From Prasinococcaceae sp. CCMP 1430 (Eukaryota > Plantae > Prasinodermophyta): DNA of 36,726 nt. A model generated the notes under the pieces. It saw nothing but the letters and a program-made list of their open reading frames with translations. It was not told the origin of the DNA and ran no database searches. Shown piece by piece: positions 3 to 21,200 of the stretch. A program made the position numbers and the translations under genes. The stretch covers positions 1 through 36,726 of the forward strand of contig RQSC01000842.1 in assembly GCA_013416795.1 (NCBI GenBank), written 5' to 3'. Positions within the stretch are counted from its first letter, which is position 1; each line of letters opens with the position of its first letter.

Positions 3-3000
3 TGCTCCCGCCTCCCGCGGCGCGCGAGCGCCGCACGCGACGAGCGCCGCGCGGCGGCGGGCGGCAAGCGCTTCCGCGAGGTCGCGGCAGAGCTCGGCGT
101 GGACGCGTGGCAGCGCTTCACGTCGGTGGCGCCCCCACAGTGCCCGCACGCGCAGACCTCGTTTCGCGACGGCAAGCTCGCGCGTGTCGAGGGGGTCTTC
201 TGCGAGGGCGTGCTATTCAGCGGCGGCGTGGCGACGGGCGACGTCGACGGCGACGGCGTGGATGACCTCGTAATGACGCGCTACGACGACAGCCCGGTGC
301 TCTTCCGCGGCACGCGCGACGGCGGCTTCGAGGACGCCTCGGAGGGGGCGGGACTCGTGGGCGTCGCCGGGCACACAAACGGGGCGCTGCTCTTCGACGC
401 CGACAACGACGGCGACCTCGACCTCTACATCACCACCGTGGGCAGCACGAGCGGGCACCTTTTCTTCGTCAACGACGGCGCGGGGCACTTCACTGAGGTC
501 GCGGAGGAGCGCGGCGTGATGCTGGCGACGCCCTACCCGAACAGCGGCACCAACCCCACCGCGGCAGACATCGACGGCGACGGCTTCCTCGACCTCCTCG
601 TGCCCGAATGGCTGCCCGACTTCAGCCGCACGCCTGAGTCCCCGCAGGTGACAGCCGCCATGGGGGGCTCGCGCCTGCTGCGCAACCGCGGCGCCGAGGG
701 CGACGCGTGCGGCCCCGCGCGCGACCAGAGCTGCGCGGGCCACTTCGTGGACGTGACGGTGAGCGCGGGCATCTCCCTCCCGCCGAACATCAATACGGAC
801 ACCGAGGGGTACGGCAAAGGCAACTACGACTTCCAGGCCGTGTGGCTCGACCAAAACGACGACGATCTCATCGACATGCTGATGGTCTCGGACTTCGGCG
901 GGTCGCGCGTGTGGATGAACGCCGGCAACGGGACCTTCGAGGACGCAGGGACGCCGGGGGGATGGATGGCGTACAGGCCCGACGCGATGGGGTCGGCGCT
1001 CGGCGACTTCACGGGCAACGGCAGGCTGGACGTGTTCCTGTCGGGCATCTACGACATAGACGAGCGCAAAGAACGCTCGCAGCTGATGCACGCGTTTGCG
1101 ATGGGTAACCTGCTGTGCATCGGCGAGCGCGGAGGGCAGAACAACTTCGAGGCGGACAGCCGCGAGACCGCGCGCCTGGGAATCAACCACGACTTCTGGG
1201 CATGGGGCTCCGCGTTCGTCGACCACGACAACTCGGGCGTGCTCTCGCTGGCCGTGACCAACGGCATGGACGTGCCAGGGATCACCGAGGACGACGGGCT
1301 GTACCTGAATCGCTCGGCGCACTTCTACGTGCGGGAGACCGCGGAGCCGACGTCGCCGCTTGCCGACCAGGGGCCGGGCGTGGGGTTCGCGCCTCGCACG
1401 GAAGGGCGCGCGCTGCTCACGTGGGACTTTGACGACGACGGCGCCATTGACATGGTGCACACCGGCAACAAGGCCAGGATGGAGTTGTATCGCAACGAGG
1501 GCGAGGCTGCCGGCCTGGAGCATGGAGCGTGGCTCCGCGTGAGCGTCAAGGAGCCACCGGCCCGCGGAGGCCGCGACTCGCTGGGCGCGCGCGTGCGCGT
1601 GCAGCTCGTCGGCGACGGCGAGTGGCGCCTCGGCTCCATCGGGCCGAAGGAGGGCTACCTTGCCAACGGCATGGTCGACGCGCACTTCGGCCTCGGCGAC
1701 GTTTCTACCGAGACGCCCGTGCACGCTGTGGAGGTGCGCTGGCCGGCGACGGGCAACGAGATGGTCCTTTACAACGTCTCACACAGCCGAACGCTGGTGG
1801 TGACGTCCCCCGCGGGATTCGAGGAGCGGGTGGTCATTGACTTTGCCTCGCAGGTGGATCGGTGCGCGCGCGCCACGATCGAGGCGATCACGCAGCCCGA
1901 GGCGGGAGGGGGCTCGCTTGTGCTCGAGCCATCGAGGCGCTCCATCCGTTACTATCCGCCCGCGCTTGCGCCCGGCACGAAGGCGACGCACAACTTCACG
2001 TACGTGCTCGGCGACGGCCTGGGTGGCACGTCCGAGGCCACGGTGACCCTGGCGCTCAGCGCATCGGAGGTGGCGTCCGGCGGCGAGGCGCCAACGAAAG
2101 GGTACGCGCCCTTCGACGGCCACGGCAACAACGTCGCGAACCCGACGCTCGGCTGCCCCTTCGCCCCCATGCTGCGCAGGGCCGGCTACGATTATGCCGA
2201 CGGCGTCGACGCCGCCGCCGGTCTGAATCGGCCGAGCGCTCGGCTCGTGTCCAACGCGCTGTGCCGGCAGGTCGGTAGTATGCCAGGCAGAGCGCGGCTG
2301 AACGACCTGCACACCAACTTCGGTCAGCTACTTGCGCACGACCTCGACTTCTCGACGCCCTTTGCCAACGCCAAGGTCGAGAGCAACCTCCCCATCGACG
2401 TCCCTGCTGGCGACCCGTGGTTCGACAGCTCCGCGGCGGGAGAGAAGACACTGCGCTTCAAGCGCAGCGGCGTCGTGGCGGGCACTGGCGCCAACTTCGA
2501 GATCCCACGCGAGCAATTCAACAAGGTGACATCGTTCCTGGATCTCTCGCAGGTGTACGGCTCGGACGCGACGCGCGCGGGAGCGCAGCGCGAGCGGAAG
2601 GGCGGCCGTTTGCTCATGGCCAGCGACGGGCTCCTGCCGCTCAACACGCTCGGGGTGCCGAATGCCAACCCGCTTGACAGGCCTCGCGAGGAGCTCTTCG
2701 TCTCCGGCGACAATCGGGCGAATGTGCAGCCGGGACTCTTGGTGCTGCACACGCTGTGGCACCGCGAACACAACGCCAATGCGGACGAGCTCGCGGCAGA
2801 GCTCGTCGAGGGACGCGCGGCGCGTGGCGACGCGCGAGGGGCTACCCTCACGGCCGAGGATGACGAGTCGCTCTTCCTGCGCGCGAGAGCCCTGACGATG
2901 GCGAAGTGGCAGGCCATCGTGGTGTACGAGTATCTGCCGCTCCTCCTGGGTGTGCGCTCGCTGGGCCCGTATGGCGGCTACAACGCCAGCGCGCATCCGG

Positions 3001-3887
3001 GCGTCAGCAACGAGTTCGCGACGGCGGCATTCCGCTACGGCCACTCTGCGGTGGCGGACGTGCTGCTGCGCCTGGACGAGCGTGGCGAAGAGCACGCGGC
3101 GGGCCACCTGCTCCTTCGCGATGCCTACTTCACGCCGGGCCGCGTGCGCGTCGAGGGCGGCATCGAGCCGCTGGCGCGTGGCATGCTCGCCCAGCCGGCG
3201 CAGGAGATTGACACGCGCATGGTGGAAGGCCTGCGCAACTTCCTCTTCGGCACATCGCGCGACGGCCTCGACTTGTGCGCGGTCAACATCCAGCGAGGGC
3301 GTGACCACGGCCTGGCCGACTTCAACAGCGCGAGGGAGGCGTACGGGCTCCCGCGCGTGCGCGACTTCGCGGAGGTGACGCCCGACGCGACCGTGCGCGC
3401 GCACCTCGAGGCGTTGTATGAGTCGGTCGACGACGTGGACCTGTTCGTCGCGGGGCTTGCCGAGCGCCACGTGAGGGGCGGCGCGCTGGGCGAGACGTTC
3501 GCCGCCATCATCGCCGAGCAGTTCGAGCGCACGCGCGCGGCGGATCGCTTCTGGTTCGAGAACGCAGACACGGCCCCCTTCCCCGAGCGCATTCCCGAGC
3601 TGCGCGCGACGCGCATCTGTGACATTCTCCAGAGGAACGCCCCCGGTGTGCGGTGCCCCGACGGTGGGTCCGCCTTCGTGCTCGATGCCGACGTCGGGGG
3701 CGATGGCGGCGACGGCGGCGGGGTCGAGTACGGCGGCGCTGTCGTTGCACTCGTTGGCGCTGGCAGCGCCCTCGGAGGCGCCGGCGTGGCGCTGCTGATG
3801 ACCCTGGCGGCGAGGCGTGCGGCAGCTTCAAGAGGAGGAGGGCGGCCGTACAAGCACGCCGCCCAGGCGAATGGGGGCACTCTGTAG
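3..3887 (+). CDS. Multidomain membrane-anchored heme peroxidase: FG-GAP beta-propeller + ASPIC/UnbV + Ig/cadherin-like (Big_9-type) + peroxidase-cyclooxygenase family domain + C-terminal TM; 5'-partial
   Basis: Frame +3 is open from position 3 (GGKRFREVAAELGV precedes the ORF-track start at 99). Seven DxDxDG-type repeats (GDVDGDGVDDL, DADNDGDLDL, DIDGDGFLDL, DQNDDDLIDM, DFTGNGRLDV, DHDNSGVLSL, DFDDDGAIDM). ASPIC/UnbV motif (WLRV...SLGARVRV...GYLA...HFGLG...VEVRWP). Ig-like FTYVLGDGLGGTSEATVTL. Peroxidase motifs FGQLLAHD, TSFLDLSQVYGS, GDNRAN, FRYGH, NIQRGRDHG. Hydrophobic helix at about 3742-3810 followed by basic residues. Confidence 0.9.
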   Translation, partial: CSRLPRRASAARDERRAAAGGKRFREVAAELGVDAWQRFTSVAPPQCPHAQTSFRDGKLARVEGVFCEGVLFSGGVATGDVDGDGVDDLVMTRYDDSPVLFRGTRDGGFEDASEGAGLVGVAGHTNGALLFDADNDGDLDLYITTVGSTSGHLFFVNDGAGHFTEVAEERGVMLATPYPNSGTNPTAADIDGDGFLDLLVPEWLPDFSRTPESPQVTAAMGGSRLLRNRGAEGDACGPARDQSCAGHFVDVTVSAGISLPPNINTDTEGYGKGNYDFQAVWLDQNDDDLIDMLMVSDFGGSRVWMNAGNGTFEDAGTPGGWMAYRPDAMGSALGDFTGNGRLDVFLSGIYDIDERKERSQLMHAFAMGNLLCIGERGGQNNFEADSRETARLGINHDFWAWGSAFVDHDNSGVLSLAVTNGMDVPGITEDDGLYLNRSAHFYVRETAEPTSPLADQGPGVGFAPRTEGRALLTWDFDDDGAIDMVHTGNKARMELYRNEGEAAGLEHGAWLRVSVKEPPARGGRDSLGARVRVQLVGDGEWRLGSIGPKEGYLANGMVDAHFGLGDVSTETPVHAVEVRWPATGNEMVLYNVSHSRTLVVTSPAGFEERVVIDFASQVDRCARATIEAITQPEAGGGSLVLEPSRRSIRYYPPALAPGTKATHNFTYVLGDGLGGTSEATVTLALSASEVASGGEAPTKGYAPFDGHGNNVANPTLGCPFAPMLRRAGYDYADGVDAAAGLNRPSARLVSNALCRQVGSMPGRARLNDLHTNFGQLLAHDLDFSTPFANAKVESNLPIDVPAGDPWFDSSAAGEKTLRFKRSGVVAGTGANFEIPREQFNKVTSFLDLSQVYGSDATRAGAQRERKGGRLLMASDGLLPLNTLGVPNANPLDRPREELFVSGDNRANVQPGLLVLHTLWHREHNANADELAAELVEGRAARGDARGATLTAEDDESLFLRARALTMAKWQAIVVYEYLPLLLGVRSLGPYGGYNASAHPGVSNEFATAAFRYGHSAVADVLLRLDERGEEHAAGHLLLRDAYFTPGRVRVEGGIEPLARGMLAQPAQEIDTRMVEGLRNFLFGTSRDGLDLCAVNIQRGRDHGLADFNSAREAYGLPRVRDFAEVTPDATVRAHLEALYESVDDVDLFVAGLAERHVRGGALGETFAAIIAEQFERTRAADRFWFENADTAPFPERIPELRATRICDILQRNAPGVRCPDGGSAFVLDADVGGDGGDGGGVEYGGAVVALVGAGSALGGAGVALLMTLAARRAAASRGGGRPYKHAAQANGGTL

Positions 3888-4038
3888 TCTCGAGTCGTCC
3901 GGCAATGGTAGCTGAGACTGTGCGGATGTTGGAGAGGCTGAAGTGGCGCGTGGCACACTGAGACTTTTGTATCGTACTAATCCAATTGACAATCCATTCA
4001 ACCTGTGCATCGATCGAGCGCTCGCGGCCGGCGCCAGA

Positions 4039-4056
4039 CCCCCCCCCCCCCCCCCC

Positions 4057-4090
<34 letters not shown>
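4039..4090. repeat. Abutting homopolymers C20-G32
   Basis: Read directly: C run 4039-4058, then G run 4059-4090, in the convergent intergenic region. Confidence 0.9.
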
Positions 4091-4091
<1 letters not shown>

Positions 4092-4585
4092 GCGTGTCGC
4101 GCCTCGCATGCGCGCGCGCCGTCTCTGAGCGCGAGCGGCGGGCGCGGCCGTTGCCTGCAACGCGGCGCTTTCCGCGCGCGGCATGGTCGGCGCGGGCCAC
4201 GGTGACGCGCGCGCGGCCCTTGCATGCACAACTCGGACCGTCTGCCGGTGCCGCAGCGGGACGGGGCAGCGCCGGGCTACGCGGAGGAGATGGCATGTGG
4301 CTGCCGCTATCGCAGGTGGCGGGCGGAACGGGGCGGCGCCGCAGGGCGGGCAGGGGTGTGTGTGGGCGGGGGAGGGGGGGCAAGGGAAAACGAAAAGGCG
4401 CGCGTTGGATCCCGCAGTGGGCGCGGGCGTTGCAGCAGTACCACGCGCGTGCGTTCAGTGCTGCTCACCGACGTGCGCTGCGCTTACGTTCCCGCGCGGG
4501 GTCGGAGCAGAGGCGCGGGTCGGGAAGCCTCGCGCGGGAGACGGGGGGGAGATCTCGCGTGCGGCGGCCACGGCGCGGCCGCAGC

Positions 4586-5575
4586 TCAGAGCTGTCCAGT
4601 AGCGGCCGGCGCGCCGAAGGCAATGCGCCCGAGGTCGCCGATCGAGCGCTGCACGGCGCGGATCGCCGACTGCCCGCGCGAGCTCAGCAGCATAGCGAGC
4701 ACCGCCGCGCCTGCGACGGCGATCGTCGCGCCATGCGCGTCGAGCGGCCACGTGCCCAGCTTCAGGTTGCTCGCGATGCTGCCGACGCCATCTCCGCCCG
4801 CGGCGGCACCCTTGCTGCTCGCCACCGCGGCGGGCGCCGCGCCCGCCGGGGCCTTGCCAGTCGCTGAGCGCGCGGGTAGGGTCGGCGCCGAGGTAGACGC
4901 CTCCGCTTTGCGCGCGAGCGCAGCCTCCGCCGCGGCAGCCTCCTCCTCCTCCTCCTCGGCCGCCACAGCCTCGGCGATCTGCTTGAGGATCTGGGCCTTG
5001 GCGGTCGCCTCGAGCGCGCCAGCGGGCAGCGCCTTCACCCACGCCTCCGCGGCGGCCGCGTCGCCTTCGGCGGTGTATGTGATATCGAATGCGTACATGC
5101 GCGCGCAAGCAGCCACGCGCTTGGCCATGGTGCGCGTGCTGTCCAGCTTGCCGAGCCGCGCGAGCGCGGGCGACGCGCCGTCCGCACCGGCGACGTACGC
5201 CGCGATCAGCGCCGCCGCCGCGTCGCGGCCGGGCTTGCCCTGCGCGGCCATTAGGTTTGCGAGTAGGACGACGATCGAGGCGTGGCAGTTTGCCACACCG
5301 CCCACCAGCTCATTGAGCACCGCCTCACACTCCTTCGTGCGCATCATCTTGTCGTACGCCTGCAACAGCACGAAGAGCGCGCATGTGACCAGCGAGCCCC
5401 CGTCGGCGGCCTCGCGCGCAGAGGCGCTCCCTGCGGCGCGCACGGCGGCCACGGCCGACTCCGCCGCGTCATCGAAACATCCACACACCAGATAGCGCTC
5501 CGCCTCGTCCAGGCGCGCCTCGGGCCCGACCGCCGCCGTCGCGGCCGCGATGCGCCTGTCGATGTCCGAGAGCAT
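4586..5575 (-). CDS. APEM9: APEM9/PEX26-type tail-anchored peroxisomal membrane protein (PEX1-PEX6 anchor)
   Basis: ATG at 5575, TGA at 4586-4588, 329 aa. RLDEAERYLVCGCFDDA and LFVLLQAYDKMMRTKECEAVLNELVGGV resemble the plant APEM9 N-terminus as I recall it (IERSESYLVCSMYEEA...GMVLVQSL...EIVNELRDVFGEV). C-terminal TM (ATIAVAGAAVLAMLLS) followed by AVQRSIGDLGRIAF, similar to the APEM9 tail KALADLWQLAF. Confidence 0.75.
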   Translation of the reverse strand: MLSDIDRRIAAATAAVGPEARLDEAERYLVCGCFDDAAESAVAAVRAAGSASAREAADGGSLVTCALFVLLQAYDKMMRTKECEAVLNELVGGVANCHASIVVLLANLMAAQGKPGRDAAAALIAAYVAGADGASPALARLGKLDSTRTMAKRVAACARMYAFDITYTAEGDAAAAEAWVKALPAGALEATAKAQILKQIAEAVAAEEEEEEAAAAEAALARKAEASTSAPTLPARSATGKAPAGAAPAAVASSKGAAAGGDGVGSIASNLKLGTWPLDAHGATIAVAGAAVLAMLLSSRGQSAIRAVQRSIGDLGRIAFGAPAATGQL

Positions 5576-13480: not shown

Positions 13481-14213
13481 TGCCTCTCTTCCGCACATGC
13501 ATTGGCCTTGGCACTCCTCTCTCGCGCGTTCGCGCGCGCACGCGCATATGCGCGCGCCCGCGCGCGCACACGCGCGCGCGCGCTGTGGCCACGCGCGCGC
13601 GCGCGCTATCGCCGCCGCGATTCCGATTCTCTCTCGCGCGCCCACCCTCCCCTCACGTCTATCCAATCCCCAGCTAAATTCAAAAAGTGCGCCAATCAAT
13701 CGACGGTGCGCACGTCCTCGATCGATGGATTGATTTGATTGATGCGCCCAGCCAACCAATGTCATTTGACCTATCGCAGGGGCGCCTCGACCGGCAGAGA
13801 GATCCGCATCTCCACAGCTCAGCAGCGCTTCATCGCGTTGACTCTCGCGGCAGCGAGACCGTCAATCGAAGCAAACCTGTTGTCGCCAAGAACGACAGTT
13901 GCGGTAGATTCGAGCTTGGTTAAGGGTTAGACTATAATAGGGTTAGGGCAGGTCGCGCGCATATGCGCGTATGTGCATGCGCGCAGGCCAGGCCAGGCCC
14001 CCGCCGGCGCCAGGTACAGGCCGGCCGGGCCGCCGCCGGCCAGGCCGCGCTGCGGCCAGGGCGCAGCCGGGGCGGGTGCCTGGCGTCTGCTGCCGCTGGG
14101 TGGGTTGTGTTGGCTTCCAATGGGATCGTGTTCGCATTTATGTGTGGGGTTAGGCCCTTGAGCTACGTGCTCGCTCGCCAGCTAGAGTGGAAAGCTGCCG
14201 GCGAGGCGAGCTC

Positions 14214-17200
14214 CTAGCCGAGGGGCGGCAGGGGCGCGCTCTTCGCGACGCCAGCATCAATGCGCTCAGTGACCGTCACCAAGACCTTGTCTAGACCCAT
14301 GCGCCGCACGTGCGACGAGCTGGAGCCGGGCGACGCGCGGGGCGCCGGCGAGCGGGCGGGCGGCGGGGACCGCAGGGGCGAGCCCGCCGGCGTGCGCCGG
14401 GCAGGGGAACGCGGGGGCGACGGCAGGGGCCCGCGCGCGGGACTCATCGCGTCCGTCGCCTGCGCCGAGGCCGCTGAGGCCGCCTTGGCGCCACCGCGGG
14501 CTCCCGCGGTGAATATGGCTACGCCCGCGCCGGCGACCGCACCCGCGATGCCTCGCAGTGCGCGGAACGGCTGGAGCAGCTCGCGCCCCGCTCCCTCAGG
14601 CCTCTTCGCGCTGGCCTCGCCGCCATTCGCGCCGACGTCGGCGCTCCCGCCGTCACTGGGAGTCGCCTGTCCGGTGCCCGCTGCGGCGGAAGCTGGAGCA
14701 CCCACCCCAGTGCTCTCCTGCGGCTGCGCAGATTGCTCCGGTCGATGCTCGCGCCGGCCCGCCGCCAGGCGCGCCTGCTGCTGCTGGACTCTGCTCAGCT
14801 GCGCGCGCGCGCGCCCGAGCTCCGTGGCCGTCTCCTTGTGCTCCTTGGACGCCTTCGCGAGCTCGCGCTTGCGCTTGTGCGCAGCCGCGGACATCGCGGC
14901 GATGGCTTTCTCGCGCTTGCCGATCTCAGCTTTGGCGCCTGCGAGCTGCTTGGCGAGGGCATCTGCATGCATCTTCGACCGGGCGAGCTCGCCGCGATGC
15001 ACTCGCTCCGCGTTCGCGAGCTCAGCCCGATGCTCGCGCGCGGTGCCCGATGCGGCCCTGAGCTCGCTCGCGAGCCGCTTCACGTCGGCTTCCGAGCGCG
15101 CGCGCGTGTTCTTGAGCGATTCCGACAAGCGCTTGGCACTCTCGCGCGACTTTTCCAGCTCCGCGCGCAGCCTGGCCACGTCTTTCTTCGAAGCAGCCAC
15201 GCCCGCCTTGGCATTGTCCACCTCAGCCCTCGACTTCTGCTCAGCGCTCGCCTGCGCACCCTGCAGGTCTGTCCGCAGCGAGCATAGCTGGGTCTCTAGC
15301 TCCGCGGCGGCGGCCTTGTACCGATCGCCGTCGGCGACAGCACTCCTGAGCCGCCCGTCGACCTCCGCCAGCTCTGACTGCGCGGTGACCCTCCCTGCCC
15401 GCTCGACTTCGAGCTGTGCGCGCACAGCATTGAGCTGCGACTCGTTGGCCTCCGCCTCGCTCGCTGCGGCCGCCACGGTCGAGCGCAACATCTCCTCGGC
15501 GGTGGTGGCTGCCGCCGTCCGTGCGGTCTCCGCGTCGGCGCGCGCGGTCTCCGCGTCGGCGCGTGCGGCCTCCGCGTCGGCGCGCGCGGCCTCCGCGTCG
15601 GCGCGCGCGGCCCCCAGAGCAATCTCGAGGCGCGCCCTCTCCGTGCGGGCACTCGCGAGCTCCTTCTGCAGTTCGGACACGGTCGAGCCACTTGACGCAA
15701 GCTCACCGTCGACGCGCGCGGCCGCCGCCGCCATCCCCTCCAGCTCACCACGCAGCTTCTCCTTCTCGGCCTGAGCGGCGCGCATCTCGACCTCCGCCGC
15801 GTCCCTGCCTGCCAGCGCGGCCTGCGTCTGCTCCTCCGCGCTCTCCTTGTCAGCGCGCGCAATCTTGAGCTCCTCGCTCAACTGCTCGAGAGTGGCCTCG
15901 AAGCCCGAGTTGGTGTCATTGACTGCGTCCAGCGCGCCCTTGAGGCCCGACTTCACCTCCGTGACCACCTTCAGCTCGTTCTGAGCCTCTTCCTTCATCT
16001 TGGTCGTGGTCGCGAGCTCTGCTGCAAGTGCCTCGAGCGTAGATTCGACGGTCGCCTTGGCCTCGGCCACGGCACTCAGCTCCGCGCGCAACGCGCGCTC
16101 CGTGCCGGCGCTCTCGTCGACGGCGGCTTTCAGCATTTCATTCGCCCGATCCAATTCAGACTCGGCACGCGCCCTGGCTTCTCCCACCGCGCACAGCTCG
16201 TCGCGCAAGGCACGCTCGATGTCGGTGCGGGCTTGAACGGTAGCGTCTAGCTTCTCCTCAGCGGCGCTGAGCTTTGCGTCGACGCTTGCTTTGGCCCCGA
16301 CCACTGCGGCCAGCTCAGCCTCGATGCTGGCCTTGGCCTCGGCGAGCGCCTTGAGCTCGGCACGCCAGCCGGTTTCGCTGTCCTCGCTTGCTCGTCTCTT
16401 CGCCGCTATGGCCTCGGTGGCCGTTTTGAGCTCGCCCTCGACGCCGGCTTTGGCTGCTGTGAGCGCAATGACTTCAGTCCTGAGGGTCCGCACGTCTCCG
16501 ACGAGCTCAGTGTTGGTCTCCTTCATCGCAGCGAGTTCCCCTCGGAGAGCTTCCTCAGTCGCGCGGTGGGCCTCCTTCATGGCCGAGATCTCTCCTTCGG
16601 CAGTGGCGTGATCTACATCCGCGTTGGCTGCAGCTTTCGCACTCATCTCCGCCAACTCGAACTCCATGCTCGAATTTGCGGCGGCTGCATCGGCGAGCTT
16701 ATGCTCGAGGCGCCTCGTGTCATCAAGCGTCGCCTTCAGCTCGCCCTCTGCTCGGCTCTTCGCAGCCATTGCTCCATGCAGCGACGTCTCGATTACCTGT
16801 ATGGAAGCCGTCGCGACGCCGAGCTCAGCCTCAGCGTTGGCCTTCGCCTCGGAGATAGCTCGCAGCTTCGTGCGTAGGTTTGCGTTGGCCTCAGCGAGTG
16901 CCTCCAGCTCCCGCTCTGCCGCGTCGCGCGCGTCCTCAACGTCCAGCTTGCGCGCTCGGAGCGCGTACAGCTCACCCTCGGCCTTCGCGCGCCCCTCAGC
17001 CTCCAAGCGCAACTTCGCCTTGGTCACCTCCAACGCGCTCTGGGCAACGAGCTGAGCGGCGCGCGCCTGCTCGAGCTCGGCATCGCCGACCGAGATGGAT
17101 TCCTGCGTTTGCGGAGGGGTGCATTCGGACGCCCCATAGGCTTCTTCTTGCCACTCTAGACCCTTCTTCGCAGGAGTCGAGGGCGAGTCGCCGCCCTCAG

Positions 17201-18719
17201 ACGCCTGCTCAGCTGCGGCCGCGCCTTCCTGGTCACTGTCCCTGCCGGGCGACGACAAGGAAGCGAAGATTGCGGCTGCCGCAGCGGCGGCCTTCTCGGT
17301 TGCCACTGACTTGCGGCTCCGCCGGACCGGCGGCGCTCGCGAGGCCGCGAGCCTGCGCGTGTGCTCCTCTCGCTCCTCGTCCAGAAGTGCCTGACGCAGC
17401 CCGAGCAGCTTCTGCTCTAGGTCCGGATGGTTGGCCTGAGTGCCATCGCCATCGCCTTCGGCGTGCGCCTGCGCGAGCTCAGCGCGCAGCGCAGCAGCAG
17501 CTCCCGCTTGTCGCAGGAAGAAGGAGTCGGAGCTGCTAGTCACCTCGTTCACGCGAACGGCGTTGCGCACCCGCATGCAGCTTGCCGCGAAGCGCAGCGT
17601 TGACTTGTTCTCTTCGACGTTCCACGGCGCGGGCGTCAGGGCGCAGATGACCACCGTCCGCGCATTCCCGCCCAGCGGGGCGCGCAGGATGCGCGTGAGC
17701 ATGCTGTCGCGGTATGGGATGCGGCTGATGCCTTTGTCGGTGCCATACGCTTGCACCCCACGCTTTCTCCGCCCAAGCTTCGAGACGACCAGTCCCAGCG
17801 TGACGAGCGATCTGTTGATGATATCGCCCGGCTCGGCGAGCCTGCCAGCTCTCTCGGCCTCGATGTGCTCACGCCCCACGTTGGCCACCTCCACCAGGTA
17901 CAGCCTCCCAACGCGCGCGCTGGAGTTCCGGCTCCCGCCTCGCTCAGCGGATTCGACGGTGAGGCGTAAGATCGTGTGCGCGCGGCTTTCCTCCGCGCCG
18001 TCGATCGCCCGGCGCGTGCGCTCACCTTCGTCCAAGATGGCCTCGACGTCGTCCTCGTCGCGAACAATCCGCTCCGCGCAGCCCTTCACGACGGCACCGC
18101 TCGTGGCCTCCGCGCGCATCACGAGCGATTCGTTTCGCGCGTCCAACAGGTCAGCAAGCTCCTCGCCATGCACCTGGAAGAAGGCCGCGCGCACGACGCA
18201 CTCGCGCTGCGCGGCCTGCGCAGCGGCGGCCGTGAAGACGTCGCGGGCGGCACGCAGCGCAACGCCCGGGTCGGACGCGGTGCCGCGCATCGTGTGCGAC
18301 TTGCCCGCGCCCTCTGGGCCATAGACGAGCACGCATCCATTGCAGCCCTCGGCGACAGAGCGCGCAATGGACGCGGGCCAGTCCAAATACACCTCCGCCG
18401 TGGATGCGTCCGGACGGTAGACAGCATCGTACTCCCACGGTCCCGTGGGAAGTTTCACGGGAGACGAGCCGGCGGGCGGCGGCGACGAGGGCGCCGCGGC
18501 CGCGTCGCCCGAGTACGCGAGCGTGTTCCCGACGACGCGCAGCTTTGGCAGTGGCACCAGCGCGGATGGAGAGTCAGCGTGCGTGGCCGCGTGCATTGCG
18601 GCTTCCTTGGCAGCCCTTCGGCGCTCGGCGTCGGAGAGCGGCCTGAGGCGCACGACGACGGCCACGCCGAACTCGTCCGTATCCGCGACCACCTCCGAGG
18701 CGCCGCCGGCCGCCGCCAT
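14214..18719 (-). CDS. Kinesin-7 (CENP-E-like) protein with long coiled coil and degenerate switch I/II
   Basis: N-terminal motor domain: VVVRLRPL, P-loop YGPEGAGKSHT, INRSLVTLGLVVSKL, IPYRDSMLTRILRAPLGGNARTVVIC, STLRFA...VNEV. About 900 aa of Ala/Glu-rich heptads. Best ATG at 18719; upstream open-frame sequence looks non-coding. Confidence 0.88.
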   Translation of the reverse strand: MAAAGGASEVVADTDEFGVAVVVRLRPLSDAERRRAAKEAAMHAATHADSPSALVPLPKLRVVGNTLAYSGDAAAAPSSPPPAGSSPVKLPTGPWEYDAVYRPDASTAEVYLDWPASIARSVAEGCNGCVLVYGPEGAGKSHTMRGTASDPGVALRAARDVFTAAAAQAAQRECVVRAAFFQVHGEELADLLDARNESLVMRAEATSGAVVKGCAERIVRDEDDVEAILDEGERTRRAIDGAEESRAHTILRLTVESAERGGSRNSSARVGRLYLVEVANVGREHIEAERAGRLAEPGDIINRSLVTLGLVVSKLGRRKRGVQAYGTDKGISRIPYRDSMLTRILRAPLGGNARTVVICALTPAPWNVEENKSTLRFAASCMRVRNAVRVNEVTSSSDSFFLRQAGAAAALRAELAQAHAEGDGDGTQANHPDLEQKLLGLRQALLDEEREEHTRRLAASRAPPVRRSRKSVATEKAAAAAAAIFASLSSPGRDSDQEGAAAAEQASEGGDSPSTPAKKGLEWQEEAYGASECTPPQTQESISVGDAELEQARAAQLVAQSALEVTKAKLRLEAEGRAKAEGELYALRARKLDVEDARDAAERELEALAEANANLRTKLRAISEAKANAEAELGVATASIQVIETSLHGAMAAKSRAEGELKATLDDTRRLEHKLADAAAANSSMEFELAEMSAKAAANADVDHATAEGEISAMKEAHRATEEALRGELAAMKETNTELVGDVRTLRTEVIALTAAKAGVEGELKTATEAIAAKRRASEDSETGWRAELKALAEAKASIEAELAAVVGAKASVDAKLSAAEEKLDATVQARTDIERALRDELCAVGEARARAESELDRANEMLKAAVDESAGTERALRAELSAVAEAKATVESTLEALAAELATTTKMKEEAQNELKVVTEVKSGLKGALDAVNDTNSGFEATLEQLSEELKIARADKESAEEQTQAALAGRDAAEVEMRAAQAEKEKLRGELEGMAAAAARVDGELASSGSTVSELQKELASARTERARLEIALGAARADAEAARADAEAARADAETARADAETARTAAATTAEEMLRSTVAAAASEAEANESQLNAVRAQLEVERAGRVTAQSELAEVDGRLRSAVADGDRYKAAAAELETQLCSLRTDLQGAQASAEQKSRAEVDNAKAGVAASKKDVARLRAELEKSRESAKRLSESLKNTRARSEADVKRLASELRAASGTAREHRAELANAERVHRGELARSKMHADALAKQLAGAKAEIGKREKAIAAMSAAAHKRKRELAKASKEHKETATELGRARAQLSRVQQQQARLAAGRREHRPEQSAQPQESTGVGAPASAAAGTGQATPSDGGSADVGANGGEASAKRPEGAGRELLQPFRALRGIAGAVAGAGVAIFTAGARGGAKAASAASAQATDAMSPARGPLPSPPRSPARRTPAGSPLRSPPPARSPAPRASPGSSSSHVRRMGLDKVLVTVTERIDAGVAKSAPLPPLG
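15526..15611 (-). repeat. 21-bp in-frame tandem repeat (one heptad, ARADAE[A/T]) about 4 copies
   Basis: Encodes AARADAEAARADAEAARADAETARADAETAR within the kinesin coiled coil. Confidence 0.85.
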
Positions 18720-19640
18720 CGCGCCGGGGCGCTGCGGGCGCGCCGCCGGCGAGGAGATTGCCAGGGATGGGAGGGGACTGCGGCGCGCGGCGGCGACGCG
18801 CCCCCCGCCCGCGCTGTGACCCGGCCGGCGCTCCCCCCTTCTCTCCCTCCCCCATCCCCCTAACCCCCTCCCACCCGGTTCGGCGCCGCACCGAGCGCAC
18901 CCGCCGCGCGGCGCCGTGCCCCCTGGATTCTCCAGCAGCTCGCCAGCCGGAGCGGGCGCGGTCTCGGACGGGCGGGAGGACTCCCCCGAACCCCATCGGC
19001 GGCGGGGGCGAAAGGGCGTCCCAACCGCCGCGCCCCGCCGCGCCCCGCCGCGCCGATGCCGGATCGGATCCGTCGATCGACTCCTCGCTCGGCCGGTCGG
19101 TCGGGTGGATCCGTCCGGATCGGGATCGGGGGGGCGGGGATCCCCACGCTTGCGAGCTGCCTCCTTCTGCGCAAAATTACAGACCCTAACCCTAAATCCT
19201 CGGAGGCCTGCCCGGGCCCACCCACCCCCGCGCACGCGCGCTCGCCGGCCGGCGAAACAAAAACACGTCCGGCTGGCAGGCGGAAAAAAGACTGACAGAC
19301 GGAGAGACACACACNCCGCTGGGAGCGCGGCTGGTGGTGGGCGCGGCGAGGGGATTGAGGGCGCGGATGGCGGTGGCGGCGACGGCCGGCCGCGAGCGCG
19401 GGGGCAGAGGGCGGGGGAGGACGATCGAGGGCCGGTGCCGTCCCGCGAGCGCGGGCATCCGCACGGGGCGCGGGGGCGAGCGAGGAAGCGAGCGCAGCAG
19501 CCACCCCCGCTGGATGGCGCGCCTGACTCCGACCGCGAGGCGCCTGCGCCTGCGACCCTCGGGCTGACGGCGAGTGCGGGCTTGCTCGCGGTGGGCCTCG
19601 TCGCTCGCGCGCTCGCGCGGCGGCGCACGCGGCGGCGCAG

Positions 19641-21200
19641 GCCGCAGCTGAGCGCGCGGCAGCCGCGCAAGCGGCGGCCGTCGCACGGCGCGAGGCGGAG
19701 CAGCGCGCCGCTGCCCGAGCCGTCGCGCTGGCTGAGCTCGAGGCGAAGTTCGAGCCTCTGCCCAATTGCAAGCTCGTACCGCGGGCCGAGCTCGCCAGGC
19801 CGTGGTCGCCCGTCGGCGGAGGCTCGTTCGGCTCGGTCTTCAGCACGTCGTGGCTCGGCCAGCCTGTCGTGGCGAAAAGGCTCAAGCGCGTGCGCGATCT
19901 CGCCGATGTCGACGCGCTCGTCGCTGAGGCGGCCGTCCTCGGCGCGATCGGCCCGCACCCCTGCATCGGGCTCTATTACGGAGTGAGCGTGGACGTCGTC
20001 GACGAGCCCGCCAGGGGGGGAGGCGAAGGCGACGGCAGCGCGAGCGCGGACGACGGCGGCGGCGGCGCGCGGCGGGCAGGCAGCGCACCCGTCTGGGATC
20101 GCCTGCGCCCCGACGTCGCGCTAATCATGGACCTGGCGGAGGGTGACCTGTCGATGCTGCTGTACAGCCGCGACAGCGCCACGGGTGAATTCGACTACCC
20201 GCTCTCGCTGGCAGACGCGCTGGGGCTGGCGCTGCAGATCGCGCAGGCGCTCGCGCACCTGCACTCGACGGGCGTGGCGCACATGGACCTGAAGCCGGAG
20301 AACGTGCTGCTCGAGGCTGCGCGCGAGGGCACGCCCACGGTCGCCGGCGGTCGGTGGCGCGCTCGCGTCGCCGACTTCGGCCTCGCACGCATCTCGACGT
20401 ATCAACGCACGAATTCGCCAACCTCGACATTGCAAGGCTCCACTGTCAGCTCGAGCGTCATGAGCTCGGTTCGTGGCGCGCGCGGCGCTCATTTGGCCGC
20501 GTCGTACGTCGGCAGCACTGCCACGAGCGCCTACCGGCCGTCGGCCGCCGTGGCACTTGGGACGCGTGGCGCTGAGGGAACTGTTGAAGTTGGGGGCGCG
20601 CCCATGGCTGGCGACACCGTCGACGAGACGGAGGCTGCCGGGAGAGGCGCGGAGGAGGGCCGCGGAAGCGCGGGTCAGGCGGCGCAGGATCAGCCCGCAA
20701 CACCGGCGGAGGCCGTGCGCGCGGCGGCCGTCGCGGCGCACGCCGCCGCGCACGGCGCCGCGCCGCGGAATCGGCGCGTTGGAACGTACGCCTTCATGCC
20801 ACCTGAGGCGTTTTCCACGTCTGATAGCGACATGGACGGTTCGTACGACGAGCGCTGCGACGTGTACTCCTTCGGCGTGCTGCTGTGGACGCTCATGACC
20901 CGCGAGCGACCGTGGCAGCGTTGTGGCAGCCGCAAGGAGCTGGTGGCGCGCGTGACGTCTGGCGAGCGGCCACCGTTGCGCCTGCCGCACGCGGAGATGC
21001 TCCGTCCGCAGCCGCCGCAGCTCGTTCACCTGTGGCCAGCGGGCACCCCTCCAGGGGTGGCCTCTCGCTTCGCCGAGCTCGTGCGCGCGTGCTGGCACCA
21101 CGAGCCCGCGGCACGCCCGGACATGTCCACTGCGATCACCGAGCTGCAGGCGATCGCTGCAGAAAGCGCCGCCGCCGCCGCCAGGGCCCCCTCGCGCTAA
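19641..21200 (+). CDS. TKL/MAP3K-like protein kinase, non-RD; 5' end unresolved
   Basis: Frame +3 is open from 19527 with no ATG before the kinase domain. VGGGSFGSVF Gly-loop upstream of the ORF-track start, VVAK, alphaC Glu (VAEAAVL), HMDLKPENVLL, DFG, GTYAFMPPE, DVYSFGVLLWTLMT..PW, CWHHEPAARP. The start given is a candidate CAG acceptor. Confidence 0.85.
   Translation, partial: AAAERAAAAQAAAVARREAEQRAAARAVALAELEAKFEPLPNCKLVPRAELARPWSPVGGGSFGSVFSTSWLGQPVVAKRLKRVRDLADVDALVAEAAVLGAIGPHPCIGLYYGVSVDVVDEPARGGGEGDGSASADDGGGGARRAGSAPVWDRLRPDVALIMDLAEGDLSMLLYSRDSATGEFDYPLSLADALGLALQIAQALAHLHSTGVAHMDLKPENVLLEAAREGTPTVAGGRWRARVADFGLARISTYQRTNSPTSTLQGSTVSSSVMSSVRGARGAHLAASYVGSTATSAYRPSAAVALGTRGAEGTVEVGGAPMAGDTVDETEAAGRGAEEGRGSAGQAAQDQPATPAEAVRAAAVAAHAAAHGAAPRNRRVGTYAFMPPEAFSTSDSDMDGSYDERCDVYSFGVLLWTLMTRERPWQRCGSRKELVARVTSGERPPLRLPHAEMLRPQPPQLVHLWPAGTPPGVASRFAELVRACWHHEPAARPDMSTAITELQAIAAESAAAAARAPSR

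Follow-up and report, generated by a model that had tools for sequence, protein, structure and literature searches.

Does a kinesin head whose P-loop and switch motifs all depart from the canonical forms still work as a motor, or is it kept for some other task? This question is raised by a gene on the minus strand of contig RQSC01000842.1 of the marine green picoalga Prasinococcaceae sp. CCMP 1430 (Prasinodermophyta; assembly GCA_013416795.1), of which positions 1 to 36,726 were analyzed (36,726 nucleotides, hereafter the window). An initial annotation had described the product as a probable pseudo-kinesin with degenerate switches and an intact microtubule-binding face, acting as a non-motile tether or as a heterodimer partner. 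The reading that we favor, with modest confidence and on the basis of sequence comparison, is that the protein is probably a nucleotide-binding, hydrolysis-impaired, kinesin-7-like microtubule tether, encoded by a selectively maintained and probably transcribed gene.

The identity of the head was analyzed at the level of both sequence and structure. First, the motor domain matched the Pfam profile PF00225 (2.4e-60, 204.7 bits, cutoff 29.3), and this score of ~205 bits compares with 354-394 bits for six relatives. The best sequence matches in the PDB were kinesin-1 motors (8e-45), slightly above human CENP-E. Second, the AlphaFold2 (AF2) model, based on a 96-sequence alignment, had a mean predicted local distance difference test score (pLDDT) of 86.2 and a predicted template modelling score (pTM) of 0.87, and a Foldseek search with this model returned kinesin motor structures only, with template modelling (TM) scores of up to 0.92. 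Finally, a feature search of the ESM Atlas reached generic kinesin clusters only, and no relevant match was obtained from NCBIfam. As modelled, the domain is best described as a true kinesin motor with the kinesin fold.

The changes that cast doubt on catalysis lie in the nucleotide motifs. The segments GPEGAGKS, DGAEESRAH, EVANVG, INRSLVTLGLVVSKL and IPYRDSMLTRIL, on which the initial annotation had built its case, were all found on the minus strand where it had placed them, and LVYGPE and EVANVG stand where IFAYGQT and DLAGSE would be expected. The P-loop had rightly been called retained but atypical: it keeps the Walker A pattern GxxxxGKS but departs from the kinesin form GQTxxGK[ST], with Pro-Glu in place of a Gln and a Thr that are conserved at 99-100% in 95 relatives. 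Switch I does not follow the NxxSSRSH pattern: its Asn has been replaced, and so have the first and third Ser. Switch II can be aligned in two ways. In the ungapped reading, obtained with smaller MAFFT alignments and with the profile hidden Markov model (HMM), DLAGSE becomes EVANVG and the Gly and Glu are both lost; neither alignment preserves the universal DxxG spacing, and in both its Asp has become Glu; such a displaced or altered DxxG is unique among 285 aligned motors. In the beta4 EIYNE region (residues 176-192), five of the ten conserved columns were mismatched, four of these changes falling within FFQVHGEE and the fifth, S179A, just upstream. The residues that are kept include Gly134, Gly139, Lys140, Ser141 and His142 (the P-loop His), the RLRP motif, Ser245, Arg246 and His248 of switch I, and Asn302 of alpha4.

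These changes were compared with the variation seen across the family. Columns were counted as conserved when at least 85% of the 95 relatives were identical, which gave 101 columns. The query mismatched 29 of them, compared with a median of 4 and a maximum of 18 for the other sequences. The mismatches were unevenly distributed, affecting 15 of 35 conserved columns in the nucleotide motifs (RxRP, P-loop, switch I and switch II) versus 4 of 29 in L11, alpha4 and L12/alpha5 (Fisher p=0.014), so that the proposed asymmetry between the nucleotide and tubulin faces was borne out. None of the query's changes in the P-loop, switch I or switch II was found among the ~150 best relatives, in which these motifs are essentially invariant. 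Degeneracy of the switches, as claimed initially, is upheld to the extent that the changes exceed family variation; it is qualified for switch II, which may keep its Gly and Glu in the form EVA[NV]GRE.

On the microtubule-facing side, the small number of mismatches and the closeness of alpha4 and alpha5 to kinesin-7 support the earlier view of an intact surface, but three features detract from it. First, the Lys of YRDSK, which is 96% conserved, is a Met in the query (K340M). Second, the net charge of L11 was the lowest of 96 aligned motors (median +2). Third, L12 carries a basic insertion of eight residues, and its net charge of +5 was the highest of the 96 motors (median 0; maximum of the others +3). 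With K340M, an acidic L11 and a basic L12 insertion, the microtubule face appears to be only mostly intact.

These observations would be disposed of by an error in the assembly, or by an overlooked intron or alternative exon that restores DLAGSE and SSRSH. The bases were checked in assembled contigs rather than raw reads, and the RNA libraries may contain DNA. A 6134-base DNA contig from a different study covered positions 14000-19314 with 0 differences. Marine metatranscriptome contigs spanned 17623-17784 and 17825-18348 and left the P-loop, switch I and switch II all unchanged, their sole differences over these spans being at positions 18087, 18198 and 18200. The same gene, at a DNA identity of 98.07%, is present on a Tara Oceans metagenome scaffold (L001), where the P-loop, switch I and switch II are identical. 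No joint was found inside the motor in any RNA-library contig, and a six-frame scan of the whole window revealed no hidden DLAGSE, SSRSH or GQTxxGK. Because the independent DNA, RNA-library and Tara contigs agree, with neither a joint nor a hidden canonical motif, sequencing error and a motif-restoring exon are effectively excluded. We found nothing in favor of this explanation, give it hardly any credence and have rejected it, and the bases read in the initial annotation stand.

The start of the gene was placed by comparing alleles. The Met codon at 18719 lies within one long minus-strand open frame. The Tara allele differed from the query by 85 substitutions and zero indels in the 4.5-kb coding sequence, its indels falling only in the flanks (18757 and 18839 upstream; 14008, 13976-7 and 13907 downstream), a confinement that supports the start at 18719. 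Antisense and off-frame open reading frames (ORFs) reach 300-500 codons in this region (for example, 14260-15774 on the plus strand and other frames across 14200-20000), and the kinesin frame itself is open for 413 codons further upstream of its real start. The window has a GC content of 70%, in agreement with the 69.8% published for the Prasinoderma coloniale genome (PMC7455551), and with such long spurious ORFs, ORF length by itself is a poor guide to genes here; the upstream extension of the kinesin frame is marked as non-coding by the frame-breaking inter-allele indels.

Selection on the gene was estimated from the same pair of alleles as the ratio of nonsynonymous to synonymous rates (dN/dS) by the Nei-Gojobori method. 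The ratio was 0.15 in the motor (3 nonsynonymous, 7 synonymous), 0.22 in the tail (16 and 25, respectively) and 0.21 in the whole gene (19 and 32), and the deficit of nonsynonymous changes gave binomial p values of 0.005 for the motor and 4e-8 for the whole gene. Single-nucleotide polymorphisms in two metatranscriptomes comprised 14 synonymous and 13 nonsynonymous changes, mostly in the stalk. RNA-library contigs were distributed along the coding region, with none in the upstream intergenic stretch, which is consistent with transcription.

These results bear on the possibility that the gene is drifting to loss, that is, that constraint has been relaxed in a small non-flagellate cell and the product has little or no function. 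A very long branch and the lack of a known orthologue would fit such a history, and so would the premature stop at codon 212 in one environmental scaffold, that from Tara. This stop falls inside the motor, and as a result the gene on the scaffold was called as two ORFs (L001:172-1353 and 1402-5223). It represents either a rare or segregating null allele or an assembly error; a metatranscriptome contig across codon 212 has the synonymous change at 18087 in common with the Tara scaffold and does not carry the stop. However, the 1501-codon frame is open in two alleles with indels confined to the flanks, several RNA libraries contain the gene, conservation of the alpha4/alpha5 core is high, and the dN/dS of ~0.2 (p=4e-8 against neutrality) shows that this is no decaying pseudogene. 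Drift to loss seems very unlikely to us.

With regard to ancestry, we searched protein collections by word index (protein lengths of 226-719 and 825-2626 amino acids, aa) and by phmmer (exhaustive over 1.84e9 representatives), and found 33,060 kinesins. The closest non-self sequence had ~42% identity, and the sole closer match (P0121) was a Tara fragment of the same gene from the same species. No orthologue was found in the two word-index searches, in the phmmer search or in a JGI metagenome scan, and the exact 1501-aa product was absent from a collection of 15e9 proteins. The top single-domain matches carried the source names CENP-E or KIN-7O; the best matches were green-algal, with the highest identity (41-44%) for Auxenochlorella CENP-E. 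In a maximum-likelihood tree, the terminal branch of the query measured 3.09 substitutions per site, ~9x the median of 0.35. A starred split (98) grouped the query and CENP-E/KIN-7 apart from kinesin-1, kinesin-14 and KIF6/9, with the other families thinly sampled, and no starred set holds the query. Because of this long, composition-biased branch and the sparse sampling of other families, subfamily placement by the tree is unsupported. A kinesin-7-like affinity is our best guess and falls short of proven membership.

Almost no other members of Prasinodermophyta have been sequenced. Such scarce sampling may explain the lack of orthologues, but it leaves unexplained why residues that are invariant in animals and plants alike have been lost. 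We found no literature that links Prasinoderma with kinesins in a relevant way, and the term 'pseudokinesin' was found in a single paper. Outside the species itself, P0302 (L002:309-3899 or L003:163-3753) matched the query motor with the highest local identity (42-45%); its kinesin-7-like gene is fully canonical and lies on a compact metagenome contig of 62-69% GC. P0302 and P0271 were considered as a possible canonical paralogue, but both are canonical GC-rich relatives from other metagenomes that are not assignable to the present genome.

The rest of the protein is a low-complexity linker that follows the neck helix, a stalk that is probably a long coiled coil, as judged from its composition, and a basic tail, with a net charge of +10 over its last 96 residues. 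Beyond the motor we found no Pfam domain, including PF11995, which plant KIN-7 matches carry at their C-terminus, and the predicted architecture resembles that of a CENP-E-type kinesin-7 more than the NACK type with PF11995. A hydrophobic stretch ~95 residues from the C-terminus is a borderline candidate for a membrane anchor, or may represent GC-driven low complexity. The long stalk, capable of pairing, together with degenerate catalytic motifs and a retained tubulin-binding core, would also suit a non-catalytic subunit that pairs with a canonical kinesin, as Vik1/Cik1 do with Kar3. However, a search of the window revealed no second kinesin as a candidate partner. Moreover, the Vik1/Cik1 domain is C-terminal and has no P-loop, whereas here the domain is N-terminal, keeps Walker A and is followed by a coiled coil of ~780 residues, and nothing separates hetero- from homodimerisation. 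Nothing was found to sustain the suggestion of a heterodimer partner, and we consider it very unlikely.

Taken together, these observations lead us to infer how a tether of this kind might work. The head keeps the kinesin fold and, in the Lys-Ser of Walker A, the P-loop His and RxRP, the parts that hold the nucleotide, and would have lost the canonical geometry for gamma-phosphate sensing and water activation through the changes in the DxxG/Glu of switch II, the Asn and first Ser of switch I and the Gln-Thr of the P-loop. Nucleotide would be bound and hydrolyzed poorly or not at all, and stepping would therefore be lost. Attachment to microtubules may depend on the conserved alpha4/alpha5 core and the K-loop-like basic L12, and possibly on the basic tail. 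On its long, dimeric-looking stalk the protein could serve as a tether or cross-linker, whether static or diffusive, and the spindle or the kinetochores would be its most plausible location. In kinesin-1, the substitutions G234A, E236A and R203A uncouple or abolish motility.

Several points weigh against a hydrolysis-impaired tether. First, ATPase status is not readable from sequence. Second, BLAST, phmmer and the 285-sequence MAFFT alignment read switch II as EVA[NV]GRE, a two-residue insertion that aligns Gly282 with the canonical Gly and Glu284 with the canonical Glu; Gly282-Arg-Glu284 lies two residues past the canonical place, and switch II may be a working insertion variant. The AF2 model begins a helix at Arg283, directly after Gly282, so that the profile HMM and the AF2 secondary structure point opposite ways on the choice of alignment. 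Third, the conservation of Ser245, Arg246, His248, Lys140, Ser141, Asn302 and the neck linker would be unexpected if the chemo-mechanical cycle had been wholly abandoned. Finally, the motor dN/dS rests on just 10 substitutions, and there is no database orthologue to show that the motif changes are old and maintained.

Much of this could be accommodated by an active, atypical motor, in which an EVA[NV]GRE bulge, with Glu277 in place of the Asp and a salt bridge between Arg246 and Glu284, would permit ATP hydrolysis, perhaps slow, and movement or end-tracking like that of CENP-E. Besides the gapped alignments and the modelled helix, the kept Walker A, RxRP, Ser-Arg-x-His, Asn302 and neck linker and the purifying selection on the motor are in its favor. 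The retention of these elements, including the Walker A Lys/Ser and a Gly-x-Glu, makes nucleotide binding likely and slow or atypical hydrolysis possible. However, a DxxG with its Gly two residues out of register occurred in 0 of the 285 aligned motors, and the profile HMM favors the alignment without a gap, which leaves neither the Gly nor the Glu. In addition, the Gln-Thr of the P-loop, two switch I residues (the Asn and first Ser) and the EIYNE motif of beta4 have all been altered together, and L11, which normally activates the ATPase upon contact with tubulin, is now acidic. We regard an active motor as possible, but less probable than the hydrolysis-impaired tether. The intact gene, the purifying selection and the presence in RNA libraries agree with a functional, non-canonical protein, but the designation pseudo-kinesin is undemonstrated, and much of the nucleotide apparatus has been kept.

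The protein was compared with several known systems. It is like kinesin-7 (CENP-E and KIN-7, such as KIN-7O) in its N-terminal motor, KIN-7-like alpha4, L12 and alpha5, canonical neck linker and very long stalk, and differs from it in three non-canonical phosphate-sensing motifs, a branch ~9x the median, the absence of PF11995 and an unsupported placement within the clade. CENP-E has a second microtubule site that is regulated by cyclin-dependent kinase (CDK), and the basic C-terminus of the query, with its CDK-type sites, recalls this site. Microtubule binding is constitutive in KIF26B, a kinesin-11 from which IFAYGQT and DLAGSE are missing (PMC3387196). Kinesin-11 (KIF26A/KIF26B; Smy1) is the closest functional precedent, combining a kinesin fold with microtubule binding in the absence of motor activity. 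However, no specific sequence kinship with it was seen; the query retains Walker A, RxRP and a portion of switch I, and has gained a basic insertion in L12. Vik1/Cik1 and Costal2 are also kinesin-fold proteins that bind microtubules without catalysis. Vik1/Cik1 have no nucleotide site, are C-terminal and are obligatory partners of Kar3, and Costal2 has lost its P-loop, whereas the query has an intact P-loop Lys/Ser, an N-terminal domain and no partner in the window. Finally, the K-loop of KIF1A (kinesin-3), a Lys/Arg-rich L12, provides electrostatic, diffusive tethering to tubulin tails in a fast, fully catalytic motor. The query L12, which has eight additional residues and the highest net charge among 96 motors, is like this loop in charge only, which is an analogy and not homology.

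The positions of all features of the gene are listed in Table 1. Two observations concern the neighborhood. At 19634-19639, intergenic between the kinesin gene and a kinase gene, a DNA contig (run X1) has a 10-nucleotide insertion (GCGCGCGGCC) and two adjoining substitutions; many contigs stop near 19600-19640, as would be expected if a short, GC-rich repeat were dispersed in the genome. The product of the divergent ORF at 19869-21197 (plus strand) matches the last two thirds of a protein kinase domain (Pkinase 2e-25, from profile position ~73 onward), with HMDLKPEN and DFG present and a long Ala/Gly/Ser-rich insert; its N-lobe is either missing or located in an upstream exon.

Table 1. Features of the kinesin-like gene, numbered along the window.
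Feature	Position	Strand	Evidence or remarks
Kinesin-like coding sequence	14217..18719	minus	ORF and translation; 1501 codons, no intron evident; stop codon 14214-14216
Kinesin motor domain, residues 18-395	17535..18668	minus	Pfam, PDB, AF2, Foldseek
N4 motif RLRP (RxRP), residues 24-27	18639..18650	minus	Kept
P-loop GPEGAGKS	18297..18320	minus	Walker A Gly, Lys, Ser kept; kinesin Gln-Thr replaced by Pro-Glu
beta4 FFQVHGEE, replacing (S)YxEIYNE	18159..18182	minus	5/10 conserved columns changed in residues 176-192
Codon 212, AAG (Lys)	18084..18086	minus	TAG in one Tara metagenome scaffold (change at 18086)
Switch I DGAEESRAH	17976..18002	minus	3-residue deletion; N to G, S to E, S to A; Ser245, Arg246, His248 kept
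Switch II EVANVGRE	17868..17891	minus	EVANVG itself at 17874-17891
L11	17823..17873	minus	Net charge -2
alpha4 (IINRSLVTLGLVVSKL...)	17766..17822	minus	Near KIN-7/CENP-E consensus; Asn302 kept; 1/10 conserved columns changed
L11-alpha4 segment INRSLVTLGLVVSKL	17775-17819	minus	
L12	17721..17774	minus	8-residue insertion, basic cluster GRRKRG
L12/alpha5 IPYRDSMLTRIL	17685..17720	minus	Canonical save Lys to Met
Neck linker RVRNAVRVNEVT	17538..17573	minus	Canonical N-terminal-motor type
Proline-free Ala/Glu/Leu/Arg-rich stalk, residues 545-1326 (~780)	14742..17087	minus	Composition
21-nucleotide tandem repeat in stalk	15523-15612		Tandem Repeats Finder (TRF): 4.3 copies, 95% matches; encodes ARADAEA-type heptads
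Ala/Gly-rich hydrophobic stretch, residues 1387-1405	14505..14561	minus	Kyte-Doolittle 1.57 over 19 residues
Basic Pro/Ser-rich C-terminal segment	14370..14444	minus	Four S/T-P-x-R sites

Catalytically degenerate kinesin-fold proteins are known in few lineages (kinesin-11, Costal2 and Vik1/Cik1), and to our knowledge none is derived from the CENP-E/kinesin-7 group; the kind of protein is known, and the probable kinesin-7-like ancestry would be what is new. The pattern seen here is an intermediate one: the head retains its neck linker and the parts that hold the nucleotide, those that sense gamma-phosphate are broken, and charge has been redistributed among the tubulin loops. A bolder proposal, which we put forward tentatively and consider rather doubtful, is that this is the first pseudo-motor derived from kinesin-7/CENP-E, in which nucleotide would still be bound, as a switch or cofactor, but would not be hydrolyzed any more, a K-loop-like L12 and a basic tail under CDK regulation would have taken over microtubule affinity from the ATP-gated L11, and the whole would be under selection, possibly as a kinetochore or spindle tether that replaces a walking CENP-E in an early-diverging green-plant phylum. 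If the head is instead an active ATPase, the near-universal DxxG spacing of switch II would tolerate a two-residue insertion, which would be notable for the mechanics of P-loop NTPases. If the degenerate pattern is borne out biochemically, the gene would provide a natural experiment that reveals which parts of the kinesin cycle are dispensable while the head stays under selection, and it would bear on how mitosis is organized in the third green-plant phylum.

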